Shown: positions 6,167 to 11,712 of the stretch, piece after piece | How positions within the stretch are numbered: the first letter of the stretch is position 1 | Layout of the letters: the number at the start of each line of letters is the position of its first letter | Virus record (IMG/VR): IMGVR_UViG_3300043464_001630 | Coordinates: 124,001-188,000 of that record | Length of the DNA: 64,000 nucleotides | Direction: 5' to 3' (one strand) | Translations under genes and position numbers: made by a program | Notes under the pieces: generated by a model | What the model saw: only the letters and a program-made list of their open reading frames with translations | Told to the model about the DNA's origin: nothing | The model's database searches: none

Positions 6167-6784
6167 TTAACCGAAAATAGAATCACCCTTACCGTTTGGA
6201 TTATACTTAGGATTGTTTACCTTGATAGAACCACCGGGCTTGGCTTGATCAACTTTCTTAGTGAAAGGCATGTAATGTTCAGTGCCTTGAGTTTGTGAGG
6301 TCTTTTCAGCCTTACCATGAGCACTTGTCTTATTTGCTACTGCACCTTCTACACGAGAATTGGACATCTTTTGAAGCTTTTCTGCCTTTGACTTTGTTTC
6401 GAAGGGTTCGTACTTAGACTGAGGAGCTTCGTGCATTGTTTCTTCTTCTTCCTCTTCTTCAGCAGCTTCGTCGCCTTCTTCTTCGTCAGAATCTTCAGCA
6501 GCTTCGTCTCCCATATCTTCTCCACCTTCTTCACCCATTTCTCCGCCTTCTTCTTCGGTTTCTTCTCCACCACCAAGAATACCGCCTAGTAGATCATGAA
6601 GCTTTTGTGCAGTTTCGCGATCTAAAGTAAGAGTGACTTCATCGCCACCTTCTTCAGAACCGAAATCTTCACCACCCATTTCACCAGCACCTTCTGAACC
6701 TTCGCCAGAAGGTAGACCTAGTGCTTCTGCGTCATCTTGCATTACTTCTTCGAATAGCTTTTCAAATAGAGATTTATTGCTCAT
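6167..6784 (-). CDS. Highly acidic low-complexity protein, possible prohead core/internal protein
   Basis: Glu/Gly-rich middle, basic C-terminus; TAAATA-N5-ATG. Confidence 0.5.
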   Translation of the reverse strand: MSNKSLFEKLFEEVMQDDAEALGLPSGEGSEGAGEMGGEDFGSEEGGDEVTLTLDRETAQKLHDLLGGILGGGEETEEEGGEMGEEGGEDMGDEAAEDSDEEEGDEAAEEEEEEETMHEAPQSKYEPFETKSKAEKLQKMSNSRVEGAVANKTSAHGKAEKTSQTQGTEHYMPFTKKVDQAKPGGSIKVNNPKYNPNGKGDSIFG

Positions 6785-6855
6785 ATTTCTATTTACTCTC
6801 GTACATAATATTTTTTATAGCTTTTTTTAATTTTTTTACATTTTTTATATTTTGG

Positions 6856-6861
6856 TAAATA
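6856..6861 (+). promoter_or_regulatory. T4-like late promoter core TAAATA for terL
   Basis: 5 nt before ATG 6867, which favours 6867 over the TTG at 6852 as the start. Confidence 0.7.
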
Positions 6862-6866
6862 ACGAC

Positions 6867-7241
6867 ATGCCTAGAAAACCAAAAAAAGACATATACATGA
6901 ACAATCCAGCCCTACCAACAGTAGAGGCTCAATTCGAATGGACACCACAAATGGTGGCGGAATTAAAGAAGTGTAAAGAAAATATATTACATTTCGCGGA
7001 AAACCATTTTTATATTATTTCACTAGACGAAGGTAAACAAAAAATAACACTACATCCATATCAAAAGAGGGCATTAAGGATGATTAGGGACAATCGAAAT
7101 TCCATCATGTTGTTTAGTCGTCAAACTGGAAAATGCCTTGACGCCAACAACTTATGTAAGATTCGTGATAAAAAAACTGGTGAAATACAGGAACTTACGA
7201 TAAAAAAGATTTTTGATATTTCTGCTCTTGAAAAAGAGTGA
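6867..7241 (+). CDS. terL: Terminase large subunit, N-terminal fragment fused to split-intein IntN
   Basis: T4 gp17-like YMNNPAL, ELKKCKENILHFAENHFYIISLDEG, LHPYQ; Walker A SRQTGK followed directly by intein block A CLDANN. Confidence 0.92.
   Translation: MPRKPKKDIYMNNPALPTVEAQFEWTPQMVAELKKCKENILHFAENHFYIISLDEGKQKITLHPYQKRALRMIRDNRNSIMLFSRQTGKCLDANNLCKIRDKKTGEIQELTIKKIFDISALEKE
7134..7238 (+). mobile_element. Split intein N-fragment (IntN, 35 aa)
   Basis: CLDANNLCKIRDKKTGEIQELTIKKIFDISALEKE then stop; starts with Cys right after the Walker A Lys. Confidence 0.88.
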
Positions 7242-7262
7242 GGTCGTTATAAAATATAGGTG
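7228..7262 (+). promoter_or_regulatory. Putative sigma70-like promoter plus SD for the endonuclease gene
   Basis: TTGAAA(7228)-N16-TAAAAT(7250); AGGTG at 7258-7262 before ATG 7267. Confidence 0.4.
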
Positions 7263-7266
7263 ATTT

Positions 7267-8553
7267 ATGAAATCATCTAAAAACGAAATCAAATATTGCA
7301 AAATCACCGGAAAAGAACTAGATCCAGAAAAACAAAAAGCATCAGGAAATGGCTTATTCATTTCTGGTGCTGTCCGAGCTTTATTCAAAAAGAATAATAA
7401 AGATGTAGAAAAAACTAGAGAAGCTTTGAAGGATTTCTATTGGGTCGAAGAAATTGTAGGATACTATCCGAATTGGATATCTTGTGCCAGAGCTTTAACT
7501 ATGGCAGAAATTTCAGTCGAACAACAAGAAGAGATATACAACAGAGAATTTTTATCTAAGAGTAAATGCCAATTAGAAACATGTAATAAAAACATTCCAT
7601 ACGACATGCGAGGAATATCTGCATGTTGCGTCACTCATTATAATCAAGCATACGCAATCAAAAATAATAAATTTGATATATCTGATTATAAGTACGAATG
7701 TTTGGAATGTGGAATGAAATTTGCCAATAATATTTCTTTAGGAACGCATATTTCTCAGAATCATTTCACATCTGAAGAATATTATATTAAATTTCATAAA
7801 AAGTCAGAAGAAGAAGGACACTGTAAATGGTGTAATAAAGAAACGTCTTTTAATTCTATCCAAGAAGGCTACAACAAATTTTGTTATAACACTAGTTGTA
7901 ATGTGAATTACTATAACAAATACGAAAACCGACACGAAGCTTGTGGGGACGCTATTAGTAAAGGTTTGAAAGAATCACAAAATATGCCAAACCAAATTGG
8001 ATATTGGACTAAAAAAGGCTACACAGAAGAACAAGCAAAAGCTTTAGTATCAGAACGACAAACTACTAATACTGTGCCAAAAATAATGAAGCGAGAACAG
8101 TGCGACGAAAACGAAGCCATTCAAAAAAGAAAAGAAATAACTAAAAAATGGTTAGATTCATTTCCTAAACAAAATTATTCAAATGTTTCGCAAGAATTAT
8201 TTTGGCAGATACATGAAAATATTAAAAATGATTATAAAGAAATTCATTTTGCTACAATTTTAAATGGAACTAAAGTTTCAGATGGAAGTAATAATGAATT
8301 TAGAATTAAAACAGATAAAACTGTTAGATCATTGGATTTTTTCGTAAAAGACTTAAATAAAGTAATCGAATTCAATGGATACTATTGGCATGGTGCAAAA
8401 AATAAACATTACGATGAAACCAAAGATAAACAAAGATTAGATGAATTAAAAAATTTAGGATTATCTGTTTTAATAGTAAACGAACTCGATTACTACGAAA
8501 ACAAATCCAAGATCATAGAACAATGCATAAATTTCATTAACAATGGAAACTAA
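7267..8553 (+). CDS. Free-standing putative homing endonuclease: zinc fingers plus Vsr/DUF559-like nuclease domain
   Basis: C2H2 finger CLECGMKF...HISQNH, CKWC..FC..SC; C-terminal LDFFVKDLNKVIEFNGYYWH...DKQR...GLSVLIVNE; lies between the split-intein halves. Confidence 0.8.
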   Translation: MKSSKNEIKYCKITGKELDPEKQKASGNGLFISGAVRALFKKNNKDVEKTREALKDFYWVEEIVGYYPNWISCARALTMAEISVEQQEEIYNREFLSKSKCQLETCNKNIPYDMRGISACCVTHYNQAYAIKNNKFDISDYKYECLECGMKFANNISLGTHISQNHFTSEEYYIKFHKKSEEEGHCKWCNKETSFNSIQEGYNKFCYNTSCNVNYYNKYENRHEACGDAISKGLKESQNMPNQIGYWTKKGYTEEQAKALVSERQTTNTVPKIMKREQCDENEAIQKRKEITKKWLDSFPKQNYSNVSQELFWQIHENIKNDYKEIHFATILNGTKVSDGSNNEFRIKTDKTVRSLDFFVKDLNKVIEFNGYYWHGAKNKHYDETKDKQRLDELKNLGLSVLIVNELDYYENKSKIIEQCINFINNGN

Positions 8554-8893
8554 AAAATTCATAGAATCCCGTAAAGTCGAAGATTACGAAATATGGACTG
8601 ATGAAGGATGGGCAGATATTCAAGAAGTACATAAAACAATAAAATTTGATGTATGGACGGTAGAAACCGAAAACTTCGAAATACAATGTGCTGACGAACA
8701 CATCGTAATTGGGGAAAATCGTGAAGAAATTTATGTAAAAGATCTAAAAATAGGAGATAAGATCATCACAGAAAATGGACCAGAATCTGTAATTAGAGTA
8801 GAAAAATTAGATGTCGAACCAGAACACATGTATGATCTCAGTATAGATTCAGAAAATCATACATTTTTCTCGAACGGAATCTTATCACATAAC
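8543..8893 (+). mobile_element. Split intein C-fragment (IntC, 117 aa)
   Basis: No N-terminal Cys; block B-like CADEH, block F MYDLSI, block G SNGILSHN followed by Ser+1. Confidence 0.9.
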
Positions 8894-11128
8894 AGTACGT
8901 TGGCTACTATTTTTATGCTTTGGGTGGCTATTTTTAATGATGACCAAAGAATATTATTAGTAGCAAACAAAGAAAGTACTGCAAAAGAAATCTTTAGAAG
9001 AATTCGAGTCGCCTACGAAGGATTACCAAACTGGCTAAAAGCACCAGTTACTTATTATGGTCTAGAATCTCTCGAATTACAGAACGGATCTCGTATAAGT
9101 ATAACAACAACAACGGGAACCGCAGGTCGTGGTAGTAGTGCGAATCTGTTGTTTGTGGATGAAATGGACTTTATCGAATGCGTAGAAGGGTCAACTACAA
9201 TAAAATTAAAAAACGTAACAACGGGAAAAATAGAAGAAATGTCTATTAAAGACATGCATGATAATAGTAAACATCTATTAAATTTCGATAATTTTCAAAT
9301 ATTATCAGACGATGGCTGGAAATCATTCAAAGGAATAGTAAAGAACGAGAATATTAGATCTGTTAAATTACTATTTGATGATAATACAGAATTAATATGT
9401 AGCGAAGATCATGAGTTATTATCGGATTCTGGAGAATTCATTTTAGCAAAAAAATCAGAAAACACAAAACTAATTTCTGATAAAGGATTTAAATTTGTAA
9501 AGACTGTTTCGGAAAATGGAAAGATAGATGCGTATGATGTTACCGAAGTAGAAGGTAGTAGATATTACACAAATGGGGTGATATCGCACAATTGTAACAT
9601 GCTGTCTGAGTTTTGGTCTTCTGTGTATCCGATTATTTCTTCTTCTAAAAAATCTAAAATCATTGTGGCATCTACTCCAAAAGATACATCAGGTTTATTG
9701 TACAAGCTTTATGATGGTTCAGTAAAAGGAACAAACAACTGGGCACATATGAAAGTACTGTGGAGTGATGTGCCGGGAAGAGATGAAAAATGGAAGAACG
9801 AAACCATATCAGCTCTTGGAGATGTTGGCACTTTCAGGAGAGAATTTGAGTGTGTGACAGGTGAAACTCTCGTCACCATATTAAACAATAACGAGACTAG
9901 TTCAATTACCATCGAAGAATTGTACAAATTAAATAAAAACGGTATAAAAGTTCTAACTCCTTCTGGATTCAAAAATTTCGATGGTATTCAAAAATTAAAA
10001 AAAGAATGCTTAGAATTAGTTCTTAAAACTACATCATTAAAATGTAGCACAAATCACAAAATTTTGACAAAAGGTGGGGATTTCAAATTTTCAAATGAAT
10101 TAACTGTTGGTGAATTCATAAAAACATCTAACGGATATGATGAAATTGTAAAAATACAAGATTCCGGAGTTTTAGATGTATATGATTTGTTGAATGTAGA
10201 AACAAAACAATATTACACTAATGATATTGTATCACATAATTGCACTTTCGATGAGGTAGGCGAATCCGCAATTGATGAAGGTTTATTCGATGATATGCGA
10301 AAATATACAATGGAGCCTATGTATATTTTTGAAAATGGCTGTTATCTTCTCTGGGAGAAACCAAATCCCGACAGACTTTATGTTGCTGGAGTGGATATTG
10401 CAGAAGGAGTCGGAAAAGATGCTACTGTTATTCAGGTATTAGACATTACAGAACCAACAAGAATAAAACAAGTAGCAATTTATCATAACAATAAAATATC
10501 TCCGTCTGAATTCACACCAAAATTACGAGAAATCTTACAACATTGGGGTGATCCATTAGCAATGATCGAGCGTAATGGTTGTGGTGCGCAAGTTGTTGAT
10601 AACTTAAAAAGAGAATTTAGTTATGATAATATAGTAAACTGGGGAATTAATAAAGTCGCGAACAAAAAATCCATGCAACATGGACTAGTTTCGCATACGA
10701 ACACAAAATATACTGGTGTTATGAACCAGAGATATTGGGTGAATACCATGCGTTGCGTACAGATTAATGATATTAATACGGTATTAGACATGAAAGATTT
10801 TATTAGAACTAAATCTGGACATTGGAGTGCTAAAAACGGAGCGAACGATGACAGAGTGATGGCATTGGTATGGGCTCTTATGATTTTACACGAAGATATT
10901 GCTCCGGTCTATTTCGATATCATAGATAAAGACGAATTCGGAAAACCAAAAGTCATAAAATCTGTGGATTATGGAATAAGATATTTCTCTAATCCAACAT
11001 CTATATACACAAATGAAAAAGACGGAATAGGAGGAGATGCCATGCCAATGGTTTTTGGTGGAGATAATTCAGACAACACAGACTTGGACGATCTGATGAA
11101 TCAAGGATGGAAACCATTAAATTATTAA
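8543..11128 (+). CDS. terL: Terminase large subunit, C-terminal fragment: IntC plus exteins with two cis mini-inteins
   Basis: IntC ends ILSHN/S; gp17 motifs LVANKESTAKEI, Walker B LFVDE, ASTP, nuclease GVDIAEGVGKD, IERN, NDDRVMAL. Confidence 0.93.
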   Translation: METKKFIESRKVEDYEIWTDEGWADIQEVHKTIKFDVWTVETENFEIQCADEHIVIGENREEIYVKDLKIGDKIITENGPESVIRVEKLDVEPEHMYDLSIDSENHTFFSNGILSHNSTLATIFMLWVAIFNDDQRILLVANKESTAKEIFRRIRVAYEGLPNWLKAPVTYYGLESLELQNGSRISITTTTGTAGRGSSANLLFVDEMDFIECVEGSTTIKLKNVTTGKIEEMSIKDMHDNSKHLLNFDNFQILSDDGWKSFKGIVKNENIRSVKLLFDDNTELICSEDHELLSDSGEFILAKKSENTKLISDKGFKFVKTVSENGKIDAYDVTEVEGSRYYTNGVISHNCNMLSEFWSSVYPIISSSKKSKIIVASTPKDTSGLLYKLYDGSVKGTNNWAHMKVLWSDVPGRDEKWKNETISALGDVGTFRREFECVTGETLVTILNNNETSSITIEELYKLNKNGIKVLTPSGFKNFDGIQKLKKECLELVLKTTSLKCSTNHKILTKGGDFKFSNELTVGEFIKTSNGYDEIVKIQDSGVLDVYDLLNVETKQYYTNDIVSHNCTFDEVGESAIDEGLFDDMRKYTMEPMYIFENGCYLLWEKPNPDRLYVAGVDIAEGVGKDATVIQVLDITEPTRIKQVAIYHNNKISPSEFTPKLREILQHWGDPLAMIERNGCGAQVVDNLKREFSYDNIVNWGINKVANKKSMQHGLVSHTNTKYTGVMNQRYWVNTMRCVQINDINTVLDMKDFIRTKSGHWSAKNGANDDRVMALVWALMILHEDIAPVYFDIIDKDEFGKPKVIKSVDYGIRYFSNPTSIYTNEKDGIGGDAMPMVFGGDNSDNTDLDDLMNQGWKPLNY
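9179..9592 (+). mobile_element. Cis mini-intein (138 aa) just after Walker B
   Basis: DEMDFIE/CVEGST...CSEDH...AYDVTEV...TNGVISHN/C; no endonuclease domain. Confidence 0.92.
9851..10240 (+). mobile_element. Cis mini-intein (130 aa) at the FRREFE/C motif
   Basis: CVTGET...CSTNH...VYDLLNV...TNDIVSHN/C. Confidence 0.92.
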
Positions 11129-11136
11129 ATAGTTAA

Positions 11137-11712
11137 ATGGGAAATGCATTTGATCAGTCATTATTAAACAAATCTAGGAAAGATAAGTTTGTATTGACTA
11201 TTTTTCTTCCAGAAGCAATTAGAGATTTAAATTCCAAAGAAGATAGAAAAAATTCCAAATTAAATCTAGAGAGTCTTCAAATGTCTATCTACGGAACCGT
11301 TGTTCCAAGAAACGTTATACCACAAGAAGAAGTCAGATATGCAGGAAGTACTGTATATGTTTCGTCACACAATAAACCTTCGTATGATCCAGTAAGTGTA
11401 AATTTCACGATAGATAACGAATTTAAAAATTATTGGGTAATACACAGATGGCTAGAACTGTTAAGAACAGAACGTGGTGGATATTATGAACACCCAGAAG
11501 AATTCAAAAATGTAGGATTAGGACAATATTCCACAGATTTCGTAGTCACCGCAAAAGACGAATATCACAACGATGTTATACAATGGACATATAAATCAGC
11601 TTTTCCGATTTCTTTAGGAGAGATTAATTATAGTTACAGAGATGGAGGAGAAATCGAAACTTCTTTCGAATTTGTATTTAGAAGAATCGAGACAATTTTG
11701 CTACCCTTGTAA
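11137..11712 (+). CDS. Tail tube terminator/completion protein (T4 gp3-like)
   Basis: Tube-fold motifs YDPVSVNFTIDNEFKNYWVIHRW, AFPISLGEI; next to sheath gene. Confidence 0.7.
   Translation: MGNAFDQSLLNKSRKDKFVLTIFLPEAIRDLNSKEDRKNSKLNLESLQMSIYGTVVPRNVIPQEEVRYAGSTVYVSSHNKPSYDPVSVNFTIDNEFKNYWVIHRWLELLRTERGGYYEHPEEFKNVGLGQYSTDFVVTAKDEYHNDVIQWTYKSAFPISLGEINYSYRDGGEIETSFEFVFRRIETILLPL

Follow-up and report, generated by a model that had tools for sequence, protein, structure and literature searches.

A large terminase gene apparently fractured within its Walker A motif by an atypically split intein and a Vsr-like endonuclease gene

The IMG/VR virus record IMGVR_UViG_3300043464_001630, a metagenome assembly, was analysed over 64,000 nucleotides (nt), positions 124,001 to 188,000 of the record. 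This whole stretch is called the window, and coordinates refer to it. Its gene for the terminase large subunit (TerL) is divided between two open reading frames (ORFs), with a third gene lying between them. We consider it highly probable that this is a fractured gene, in which a class 1 intein between the lysine and the serine of the Walker A motif has been split by a Vsr-like endonuclease gene, and in which the two parts of TerL are joined by protein trans-splicing. The TerL packaging motor would then very probably depend on protein trans-splicing. The locus is arranged as follows, where IntN and IntC are the N- and C-terminal parts of the split intein, the exteins are the segments of TerL itself, and aa stands for amino acids.

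6867-7241, + strand: ORF1, the N-terminal part of TerL plus IntN (ATG at 6867, stop codon at 7239-7241).
6867-7133, + strand: TerL N-extein, 89 aa, ending SRQTGK (sequence, T4 gp17 and PHROG alignment).
7134-7241, + strand: N-intein (IntN), Cys1 and 34 further residues, CLDANN...ALEKE (coding 7134-7238; TGA at 7239-7241).
7209-7279, + strand: putative control region of the endonuclease gene (promoter scan, Shine-Dalgarno sequence, RNA fold).
7267-8553, + strand: free-standing homing endonuclease gene, 428 aa (profiles, structure model, homologous clusters).
8543-11128, + strand: ORF2, IntC plus the remainder of TerL, 861 aa (ORF list, sequence).
8543-8893, + strand: C-intein (IntC), 117 aa, with blocks B (CADEH), F and G (SHN) (TIGR01443, hidden Markov model).
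8894-9178, + strand: TerL extein segment 2, 95 aa, from Ser+1 through Walker B (LLFVDE) (T4 gp17 alignment).
9179-9592, + strand: intein 2, a contiguous mini-intein of 138 aa, FIE/C...SHN/C, without an endonuclease domain.
9593-9850, + strand: TerL extein segment 3, 86 aa (piece mapping).
9851-10240, + strand: intein 3, a contiguous mini-intein of 130 aa, REFE/C...SHN/C (match to CatC, 6dsl_B, E 6.7e-17).
10241-11128, + strand: TerL extein segment 4, with the RNaseH-like nuclease domain, 295 aa plus stop (Pfam Terminase_6C, 3e-10).

ORF1, the endonuclease ORF and ORF2 are on the same strand in three different frames. The stop codon of ORF1 and the start of ORF2 are separated by 1,301 nt, in which the only non-coding bases are the 25 between the ORF1 stop and the endonuclease ATG; the endonuclease stop and the ORF2 ATG overlap by 11 nt. 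The start codon of ORF1 is uncertain, and could be TTG at 6852, ATG at 6867 or ATG at 6897. Read-through, frameshifting and translational bypass were considered and rejected, on account of the three different frames and the 1.3-kilobase (kb) distance.

The pieces of the locus are recognised by Pfam, NCBIfam and PHROGs as N- and C-terminal terminase domains and N- and C-terminal intein regions. The N-extein matches the PHROG terminase large subunit (1.7e-19), and aligns with residues 82-166 of T4 gp17 (3ezk, E 3.5e-12), up to K166 of SRQLGK. Its own final residues, SRQTGK, make up positions one to six of Walker A. Alignment of the C-extein begins at its residue 2, with gp17 residues 168-260 (3ezk), and therefore Ser+1 at 8894 (STLATIF) occupies the place of T167 and completes the motif. 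The two extein ends thus abut at K166/T167 of gp17, inside Walker A, with no gap and no overlap. The nuclease domain is approximately 27% identical to gp17 of T4-like phages (tblastn). When the three inteins are removed from ORF2, 476 residues are left (861-117-138-130), which with the 89 of ORF1 gives a mature TerL of 565 aa. The original prediction, made from the sequence alone, had described ORF1 as ending SRQTGK-CLDANN...EKE before its stop codon, and ORF2 as beginning about 1.3 kb downstream with an intein that lacks block A and ends SHN-STLAT. It had also proposed that joining the two ORFs restores Walker A, and that the intein-free total is 565 aa. The ORF list and sequence, the gp17 alignment and the arithmetic bear out this description throughout. 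A megablast search of 6800-11200 against GenBank phages gave no match; the phage has no close cultured relative.

Several observations indicate that IntN and IntC are the two halves of one intein. In a hidden Markov model (HMM) of contiguous homologues, ORF1 matches model positions 1-32 (independent E-value 1.3e-6) and ORF2 matches positions 39-154 (6e-55). The two matches complement each other without overlap, and this is not a matter of chance. In a protein alignment with the contiguous inteins, IntN occupies columns 1-35 and IntC the remainder, with the break falling in what is a length-variable linker of the contiguous inteins. IntC additionally matches TIGR01443, the intein C-terminal region (2.9e-9). 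The position 1 nucleophile is a cysteine at 7134-7136, directly after SRQTGK, and is near-invariant across the alignment. Block B, within IntC, reads CADEH; its histidine column is at least 90% conserved, and alanine is found in place of threonine throughout the family. IntC ends SHN/S at 8885-8896, and so has the His-Asn and the Ser+1 of class 1. Cys1, the block B histidine and SHN are near-invariant in split and contiguous alleles alike, and by these sequence features the intein is assigned to class 1.

The position of the break is unusual in that block A stands alone in the 35-aa IntN, which comprises strands β1-β2 and helix α1, while block B is in IntC. The fold was modelled on L002, a natural contiguous allele whose IntN and IntC parts are 89% and 87% identical to those of the window, respectively, and not on the split pair. 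The AlphaFold2 (AF2) model of this intein has a predicted local distance difference test score (pLDDT) of 95.8 and adopts a HINT fold, with strands at residues 7-12 and 18-22, α1 at 23-29, and a loop of lower confidence at 30-41 (pLDDT down to 78). Its best match in the PDB is the VidaL intein (TM-score 0.79-0.83), followed by other mini-inteins, and the top 50 structure matches listed are all inteins or intein-like BIL domains. The break in the window maps to the loop 30-41 after α1. This is the S2 position, which has been assigned to AceL-TerL and GOS-TerL, VidaL and PolB16 being cut earlier, after β2 (PMC13014065). The intein of the window is accordingly classified, from its alignment and from the model of its contiguous relative, as a predicted S2-type, atypically split intein with the pair Cys1/Ser+1. 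The division into a 35-aa IntN and a 117-aa IntC, as originally proposed, is upheld by the complementary HMM matches, and equally by the contiguous alleles and the conserved fractured relatives, which are described below.

A scan of IMG/VR with ORF1 gave 61 loci (L001 being the 236-kb contig of the window itself), and alleles were mapped by tblastn of nine pieces of the locus onto all of them, with additional checks by regular expression. Empty, contiguous and fractured alleles coexist in these related lake phages. In L002, L003 and L004, whose N-exteins are 85-92% identical to that of the window, the same intein is uninterrupted (153 aa) and there is no endonuclease gene. In P0038, which comes from the cluster search with the C-intein described below, a C-intein that is 90% identical lies inside one continuous TerL ORF. 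All four (N-exteins 81-92% identical) have a linker of 4-6 residues, MTEKYK in P0038, where the window has its endonuclease cassette. Nucleotide homology to the contiguous alleles ends at 7238 and resumes at approximately 8553, which implies that the cassette replaced some 15-20 nt of linker. At the other extreme, L006 and L011 have all three intein sites empty, with K and S adjacent. The remaining combinations include the third intein only (L007-L009 and L013), a fractured second site (L010 and L012) and a fractured third site (L022).

A related locus, L005:5725-9393 (N-extein 93% identical), has an intact Walker A site and is fractured at both the second and the third sites, which carry different free-standing endonuclease genes of 408 aa and 328 aa. 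Its TerL would therefore come from three polypeptides. The second-site endonuclease of L005 is not related to that of the window. In three more distant relatives, L014:2260-5004, L044:5938-8814 and L048:5926-8835, one long TerL ORF contains, at the Walker A position that is split in the window, an in-frame insert of approximately 1,030-1,050 nt, possibly a full-size intein that encloses an endonuclease domain.

The fractured arrangement is itself conserved. ORF1 has 36 homologous clusters, about 24 of which, with lengths of 108-130 aa, have the same IntN at their C-terminus. In L062-L065 and the P0012 contig, which come from other samples and other lakes, ORF1 is followed by an endonuclease gene of 424-430 aa and an ORF2 of 592-594 aa. 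In these diverged genomes every ORF is intact, and the neighbours that follow the fractured TerL, tail tube and sheath, are kept. The IntN stop and the IntC ATG are conserved in all fractured relatives. Comparisons of the window with its relatives gave ratios of nonsynonymous to synonymous substitution (dN/dS) of 0.05-0.12 for IntC and 0.14-0.17 for the endonuclease, and there is purifying selection on IntC, the endonuclease and the exteins. For IntN the ratio is 0.23-0.5 in four of the five comparisons, a noisy estimate from a short sequence of 35 codons. The assembly is supported by an independent freshwater run from 2016, in which Logan contigs are 100% identical to the window over 7170-7308 and 8238-8687, covering both junctions; a relative in a third run is approximately 96% identical across both junctions. 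Contigs that skip the endonuclease were found in none of four runs, which is uninformative because contigs drop rare variants.

The intein DNA on either side of the cassette (7150-7238 and 8603-8647) is 96-100% identical between split and contiguous alleles in some 45-nt windows. In the surrounding extein DNA the synonymous divergence (dS) is about 1, and for IntN against L002 it is only 0.05. These conserved flanks could reflect a homing site or a co-conversion tract, the signal being too noisy to call.

The gene that fills the gap, which the original prediction had not described, encodes a protein with an N-terminal DNA-binding part, containing a C2H2 zinc finger (C145-H166), and a C-terminal nuclease domain of Vsr-like or I-Bth0305I type at about 340-428. 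Searches with the single sequence gave weak matches to REase_MTES_1575 (in Pfam, PF18741, also weakly), the C2H2 zinc finger, a PHROG homing endonuclease and the I-Bth0305I catalytic domain. The protein has 43 homologous clusters, some of them named very-short-patch-repair (Vsr) endonuclease or carrying PF18741. A family profile built from 26 homologues matches zinc fingers (7e-7), I-Bth0305I (3r3p, 1.3e-4) and E. coli Vsr (1vsr, 8e-3) in the PDB. The best Foldseek matches of the AF2 model (pLDDT 87.5) are again 3r3p (probability 1.00, TMt 0.66) and 1vsr (probability 1.00). E368 and H375 do not vary among the 26 homologues, and conservation of D357 and D387 is at least 90%; judged by conservation and not by superposition, these residues are putative equivalents of D51, H69 and D97 of Vsr. 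The endonuclease belongs to the Vsr-like family found in the fractured genes of Dassa et al. 2009 (PMC2677866).

The zinc finger, at 7687-7764 (residues 141-166), is of the classical C2H2 kind (CLEC...H...H), and the family profile matches eukaryotic zinc-finger arrays (7e-7). Phage homing endonucleases do not usually have a DNA-binding module of this kind.

The endonuclease gene appears to have its own expression signals. The best sigma70-like match in the region, TTGAAA-16-TAAAAT at 7228-7255, agrees at 10 of 12 positions, and a Shine-Dalgarno sequence, AGGTGA, lies at 7258-7263, upstream of the endonuclease ATG. The RNA of 7205-7285 is predicted to form two hairpins (z -3.58; none of 200 shuffled sequences was equally stable), the second of which, at 7257-7279, holds both the Shine-Dalgarno sequence and the endonuclease AUG in paired form. 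L062 has a 12-bp hairpin over its endonuclease AUG, and L064 a weaker one. At the other end of the gene, the IntC start overlaps the endonuclease stop by 4-14 nt in all six of the fractured loci examined. Expression may thus be regulated by the hairpin, the promoter and the overlapping stop and start codons.

A further motif, TAAA(A)TATAG, is found just 5' of the endonuclease start in three diverged phages (window 7242-7266, L062:5352-5381 and L064:5352-5369), where it partly overlaps the 5' arm of the start-codon hairpin. The combination is reminiscent of the late-promoter and hairpin control of T4 endonuclease genes.

On the basis of these observations, we hypothesise the following origin and function. 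The starting state would be a class 1 mini-intein between the lysine and the serine of Walker A in TerL. A free-standing Vsr-like homing endonuclease gene with its own expression signals would later have invaded the loop that follows the first helix of the intein, turning a 153-aa cis-splicing intein into two genes. The products would be TerL(1-89)-IntN(35) and IntC(117)-TerL(90-565), the latter with two cis-splicing mini-inteins still in place. Once translated, the short IntN would dock on the nearly complete IntC and rebuild the HINT fold, and Cys1, the block B histidine, the terminal His-Asn and Ser+1 would carry out standard class 1 trans-splicing. The new peptide bond, K89-S90, would create an intact P-loop, and excision of the other two inteins in cis would leave a gp17-type terminase of 565 aa. 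Copies of the intein DNA that lack the endonuclease gene are the most likely substrate of the endonuclease, which would in this way spread by homing. Both the splicing reaction and the endonuclease target are inferred.

Other explanations of the locus have been considered. The insert could be a self-splicing intron that carries the endonuclease ORF, in which case RNA splicing would restore a continuous intein that then splices in cis. The genome paper of the Campylobacter phage IBB_35, which is related to phage F379 below, gives this reading for an analogous locus, an intein accompanied by an intron with a homing endonuclease, without testing it (PMC3322345); Vsr-like endonucleases do occur within group I introns (PMC2677866), and stable hairpins are predicted before the endonuclease start. 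However, no Rfam group I or group II model matches 6500-11500 at E <= 1, even with permissive filters, and the 25 non-coding bases that the endonuclease ORF leaves give no space for a ribozyme core. The whole insert is under protein-level constraint (dN/dS 0.14-0.17), and the conservation of the IntN stop and the IntC ATG in the fractured relatives also argues against an intron. Moreover, two loci described below, L027 and L070, are split at the same intein position without an endonuclease, with spacers of 5 nt and 275 nt respectively, which an intron cannot explain. An intron is thus highly improbable. The possibility that the two parts of TerL are joined non-covalently, with the intein halves serving only as a dimerisation module and no splicing taking place, is likewise very unlikely. 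It is true that some endonuclease-fractured genes work as complexes, T4-like NrdA being an example as cited in PMC3322345, and that Dassa et al. 2009 describe an SbcD-like fracture without an intein (PMC2677866). Against this, Cys1, the block B histidine, His-Asn and Ser/Thr+1 are near-invariant in both kinds of allele. The break also separates K from S/T within the P-loop, where an insert of 152 residues would be expected to disrupt nucleotide binding, given what is known of Walker A motifs. Trans-splicing does occur in the characterised relatives with this type of split, AceL-, GOS- and Cat-TerL, and VidaL (PMC11766414, PMC13014065).

The least probable of these alternatives, in our view, is a dead gene or an assembly artefact, the insertion having disrupted the gene in a defective phage, or the contig being chimeric, with no functional terminase made from it. 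The window does come from a metagenome assembly and there is no isolate. Nevertheless, the independent reads across both junctions, the recurrence of the layout with all ORFs intact in diverged genomes from several samples, and the purifying selection on IntC, endonuclease and exteins are all at odds with it. No second TerL gene and no further intein was found in the 64-kb window using the intein HMM, and cultured Campylobacter phages with an analogous layout are viable. Some points do weigh against trans-splicing, in addition to the published interpretation of the IBB_35 locus. IntN has a dN/dS of 1.2 against L002, although from very few changes in 35 codons. There is no Shine-Dalgarno sequence upstream of the IntC ORF, whose translation would depend on a putative coupling to the endonuclease ORF. 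The sole RNA-labelled run that was found contains diverged relatives only, and is probably DNA. Taken together with the evidence above, these points leave a fractured TerL gene joined by trans-splicing as the explanation that we favour.

The general arrangement has been seen before. Dassa et al. 2009 described fractured genes, mainly in phages, in which the host gene's N-terminal part plus IntN, a free-standing endonuclease gene, and IntC plus the host gene's C-terminal part are co-oriented, with spacers of 27-51 nt as against 25 nt in the window; half of their loci have a Vsr-like endonuclease family, control elements and hairpins upstream of the endonuclease ORF were also noted, and one locus is a gp17-type terminase from Lake Gatun (PMC2677866). 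By its sequence, the present locus is a fractured gene in the same sense. It differs from most of those loci, in which the split inteins are mostly cut at the canonical site to give a long IntN and a short IntC (PMC2677866), in that its break is near the N-terminus and its insertion site is K/S of Walker A.

The atypically split TerL inteins (Thiel 2014, Bachmann and Mootz 2015 and Stevens 2018, as summarised in PMC11766414 and PMC13014065) provide a second comparison. AceL-TerL has 25 and 104 aa with Cys1/Cys+1, and GOS-TerL has 37 and 115 aa with Ser1/Cys+1 (PMC11766414), so that the original prediction was correct in citing them as short-IntN phage TerL inteins. AceL-, GOS- and Cat-TerL share with the window the TerL host, the class 1 mechanism, the break after α1 (S2) and the sizes (IntN 25-37 aa, 35 in the window; IntC 104-115 aa, 117 in the window). 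The nucleophile pairs differ, being Cys1/Ser+1 in the window, Cys/Cys in AceL and Ser/Cys in GOS. An alignment with the AceL/GOS type had been suggested as a check. Their consensus, CatC (6dsl_B), fits intein 3 of the window best (6.7e-17), with 2e-10 for intein 2, and fits the split IntC far less well (7e-4). At the third site of L005, which is split, the C-intein ORF begins (MKLNKNGIKVLTPSGF) at the same point as CatC. Walker A demands Ser or Thr at +1, and AceL and GOS have Cys+1, and therefore their insertion site is different. As judged from the +1 residue and the CatC alignments, AceL- and GOS-TerL appear not to be alleles of the Walker A site, and would correspond to intein 3. The site at which the known TerL inteins are split is thus apparently contiguous in this phage, and its own split site is another one.

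VidaL (6vgv) is the best structural match, and with about 22% identity it is also the best genuine intein sequence match in the PDB (E 1.1e-4). It too is naturally and atypically split and is cysteine-dependent. It differs in being split after β2 (S1), with a 16-aa IntN (PMC13014065), rather than after α1. Inteins at the identical site are found in cultured Ackermannviridae, in Vibrio phage Kuja and Salmonella phage CRW-SP2 (ARQSGK/C...SHN/TT), where the IntC-like part is 40-47% identical. These differ in having one uninterrupted TerL ORF, no endonuclease gene and a longer loop after α1. Campylobacter phages (F379 and the CP220 group) have the same order within the P-loop as the window, namely the N-terminal part of TerL with a 30-aa IntN, an endonuclease ORF, and IntC plus the C-terminal TerL part. 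F379 is an isolated, viable phage, and its stop and start codons overlap as they do in the window. Its insertion site is two residues upstream (PRQ/C...SHN/SSKST), and its endonuclease, judged by eye from the translation, has no detectable relation to that of the window. In the published annotation the insert is described as intron-associated. The endonuclease of the window shares with I-Bth0305I and other Vsr-like (EDxHD) homing endonucleases the C-terminal nuclease fold and, putatively, the conserved acidic and histidine positions. I-Bth0305I is found in a group I intron of recA, whereas the gene in the window is free-standing inside an intein ORF and has an N-terminal C2H2 zinc finger.

A search with the C-intein of 1.84 billion cluster representatives gave 1,170 matches at E <= 0.001. 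Among the best 150 of these 1,170 representatives, the C-intein is at the very N-terminus in 117, with the start M..KF[IV]E[ST], and the +1 residue is Ser or Thr in 115 of the 117. In the other 33 the match is internal, mostly to contiguous inteins after GK/C. In GenBank, 313 records of cultured phages have a similar C-intein. Such split inteins are therefore, as far as can be judged from their sequences, abundant in phage metagenomes and also present in cultured phages. In papers up to 2026, the natural examples listed are only AceL-TerL, GOS-TerL, VidaL and PolB16 (PMC13014065, PMC10189870). The original prediction had proposed a new member of a rare short-IntN class. Membership of the S2 type stands, but rarity does not: short-IntN split inteins do not appear to be rare in sequence data. 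The arrangement is thus already known, and the locus is a real further example, with relatives far commoner in metagenomes than the literature implies.

The same intein family is found in a distant TerL and in other host genes, and spot checks showed the fractures to be genuine. The distant T4-like TerL, L071, has an IntN of 38 aa and an endonuclease of 404 aa that is 31% identical to that of the window (E 7e-39). L069:3-2436 encodes a DnaB-like helicase that starts with the same C-intein, and the ORF upstream is an endonuclease homologue (39% identity over 187 aa, E 7e-33). Members of one endonuclease family are thus found with this intein family in more than one kind of host gene. In L070:2621-4295 a gp44-type clamp loader is split after GIGK/C, with a 32-aa IntN, an IntC ending SHN/TS and a 275-nt spacer without an endonuclease.

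TerL is also split just before Walker B (...GKSIS/C), in L027:5315-7473 and L031, where the stop-to-ATG spacer is only 5 nt. L029:3640-6525 and L032 have the same split with a short IntN, and with a 435-aa endonuclease gene. The comparison implies that loss of the endonuclease leaves a true split intein.

These findings raise the tentative suggestion, which we regard as plausible though somewhat more probably wrong than right, that the intein and the Vsr-like endonuclease form one composite mobile element, targeting GK/[S/T] of P-loops generally, with the endonuclease recognising the intein DNA and not the host gene. This would explain the same intein, with the same split loop, in a distant TerL, a DnaB-like helicase and a gp44 clamp loader, the same endonuclease family in TerL and helicase, and the more than 100 clusters (at 50% identity) that start with this C-intein. 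If it is correct, natural S2-type split inteins with Cys1/Ser(Thr)+1 would be an abundant and largely untapped resource. There is a demand in protein engineering for split inteins with a short, synthesisable N-fragment. The present locus adds a candidate S2-type intein with Cys1/Ser+1, at a different site from the listed natural examples, and the survey suggests many more candidates in TerL, helicase and clamp loader genes, some without an endonuclease. If trans-splicing does take place, the P-loop of an essential packaging ATPase exists only after it, and the series of alleles would document cleanly, from nature, the conversion of a cis-splicing intein into a split one by a free-standing endonuclease.

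It is worth adding that a 205-aa ORF lies directly upstream of the locus, on the - strand at 6167-6784. Its content of Glu, Gly and Asp is extremely high, and it is without a family assignment. Its position is kept in relatives, as a gene of 198-215 aa in L062-L065.

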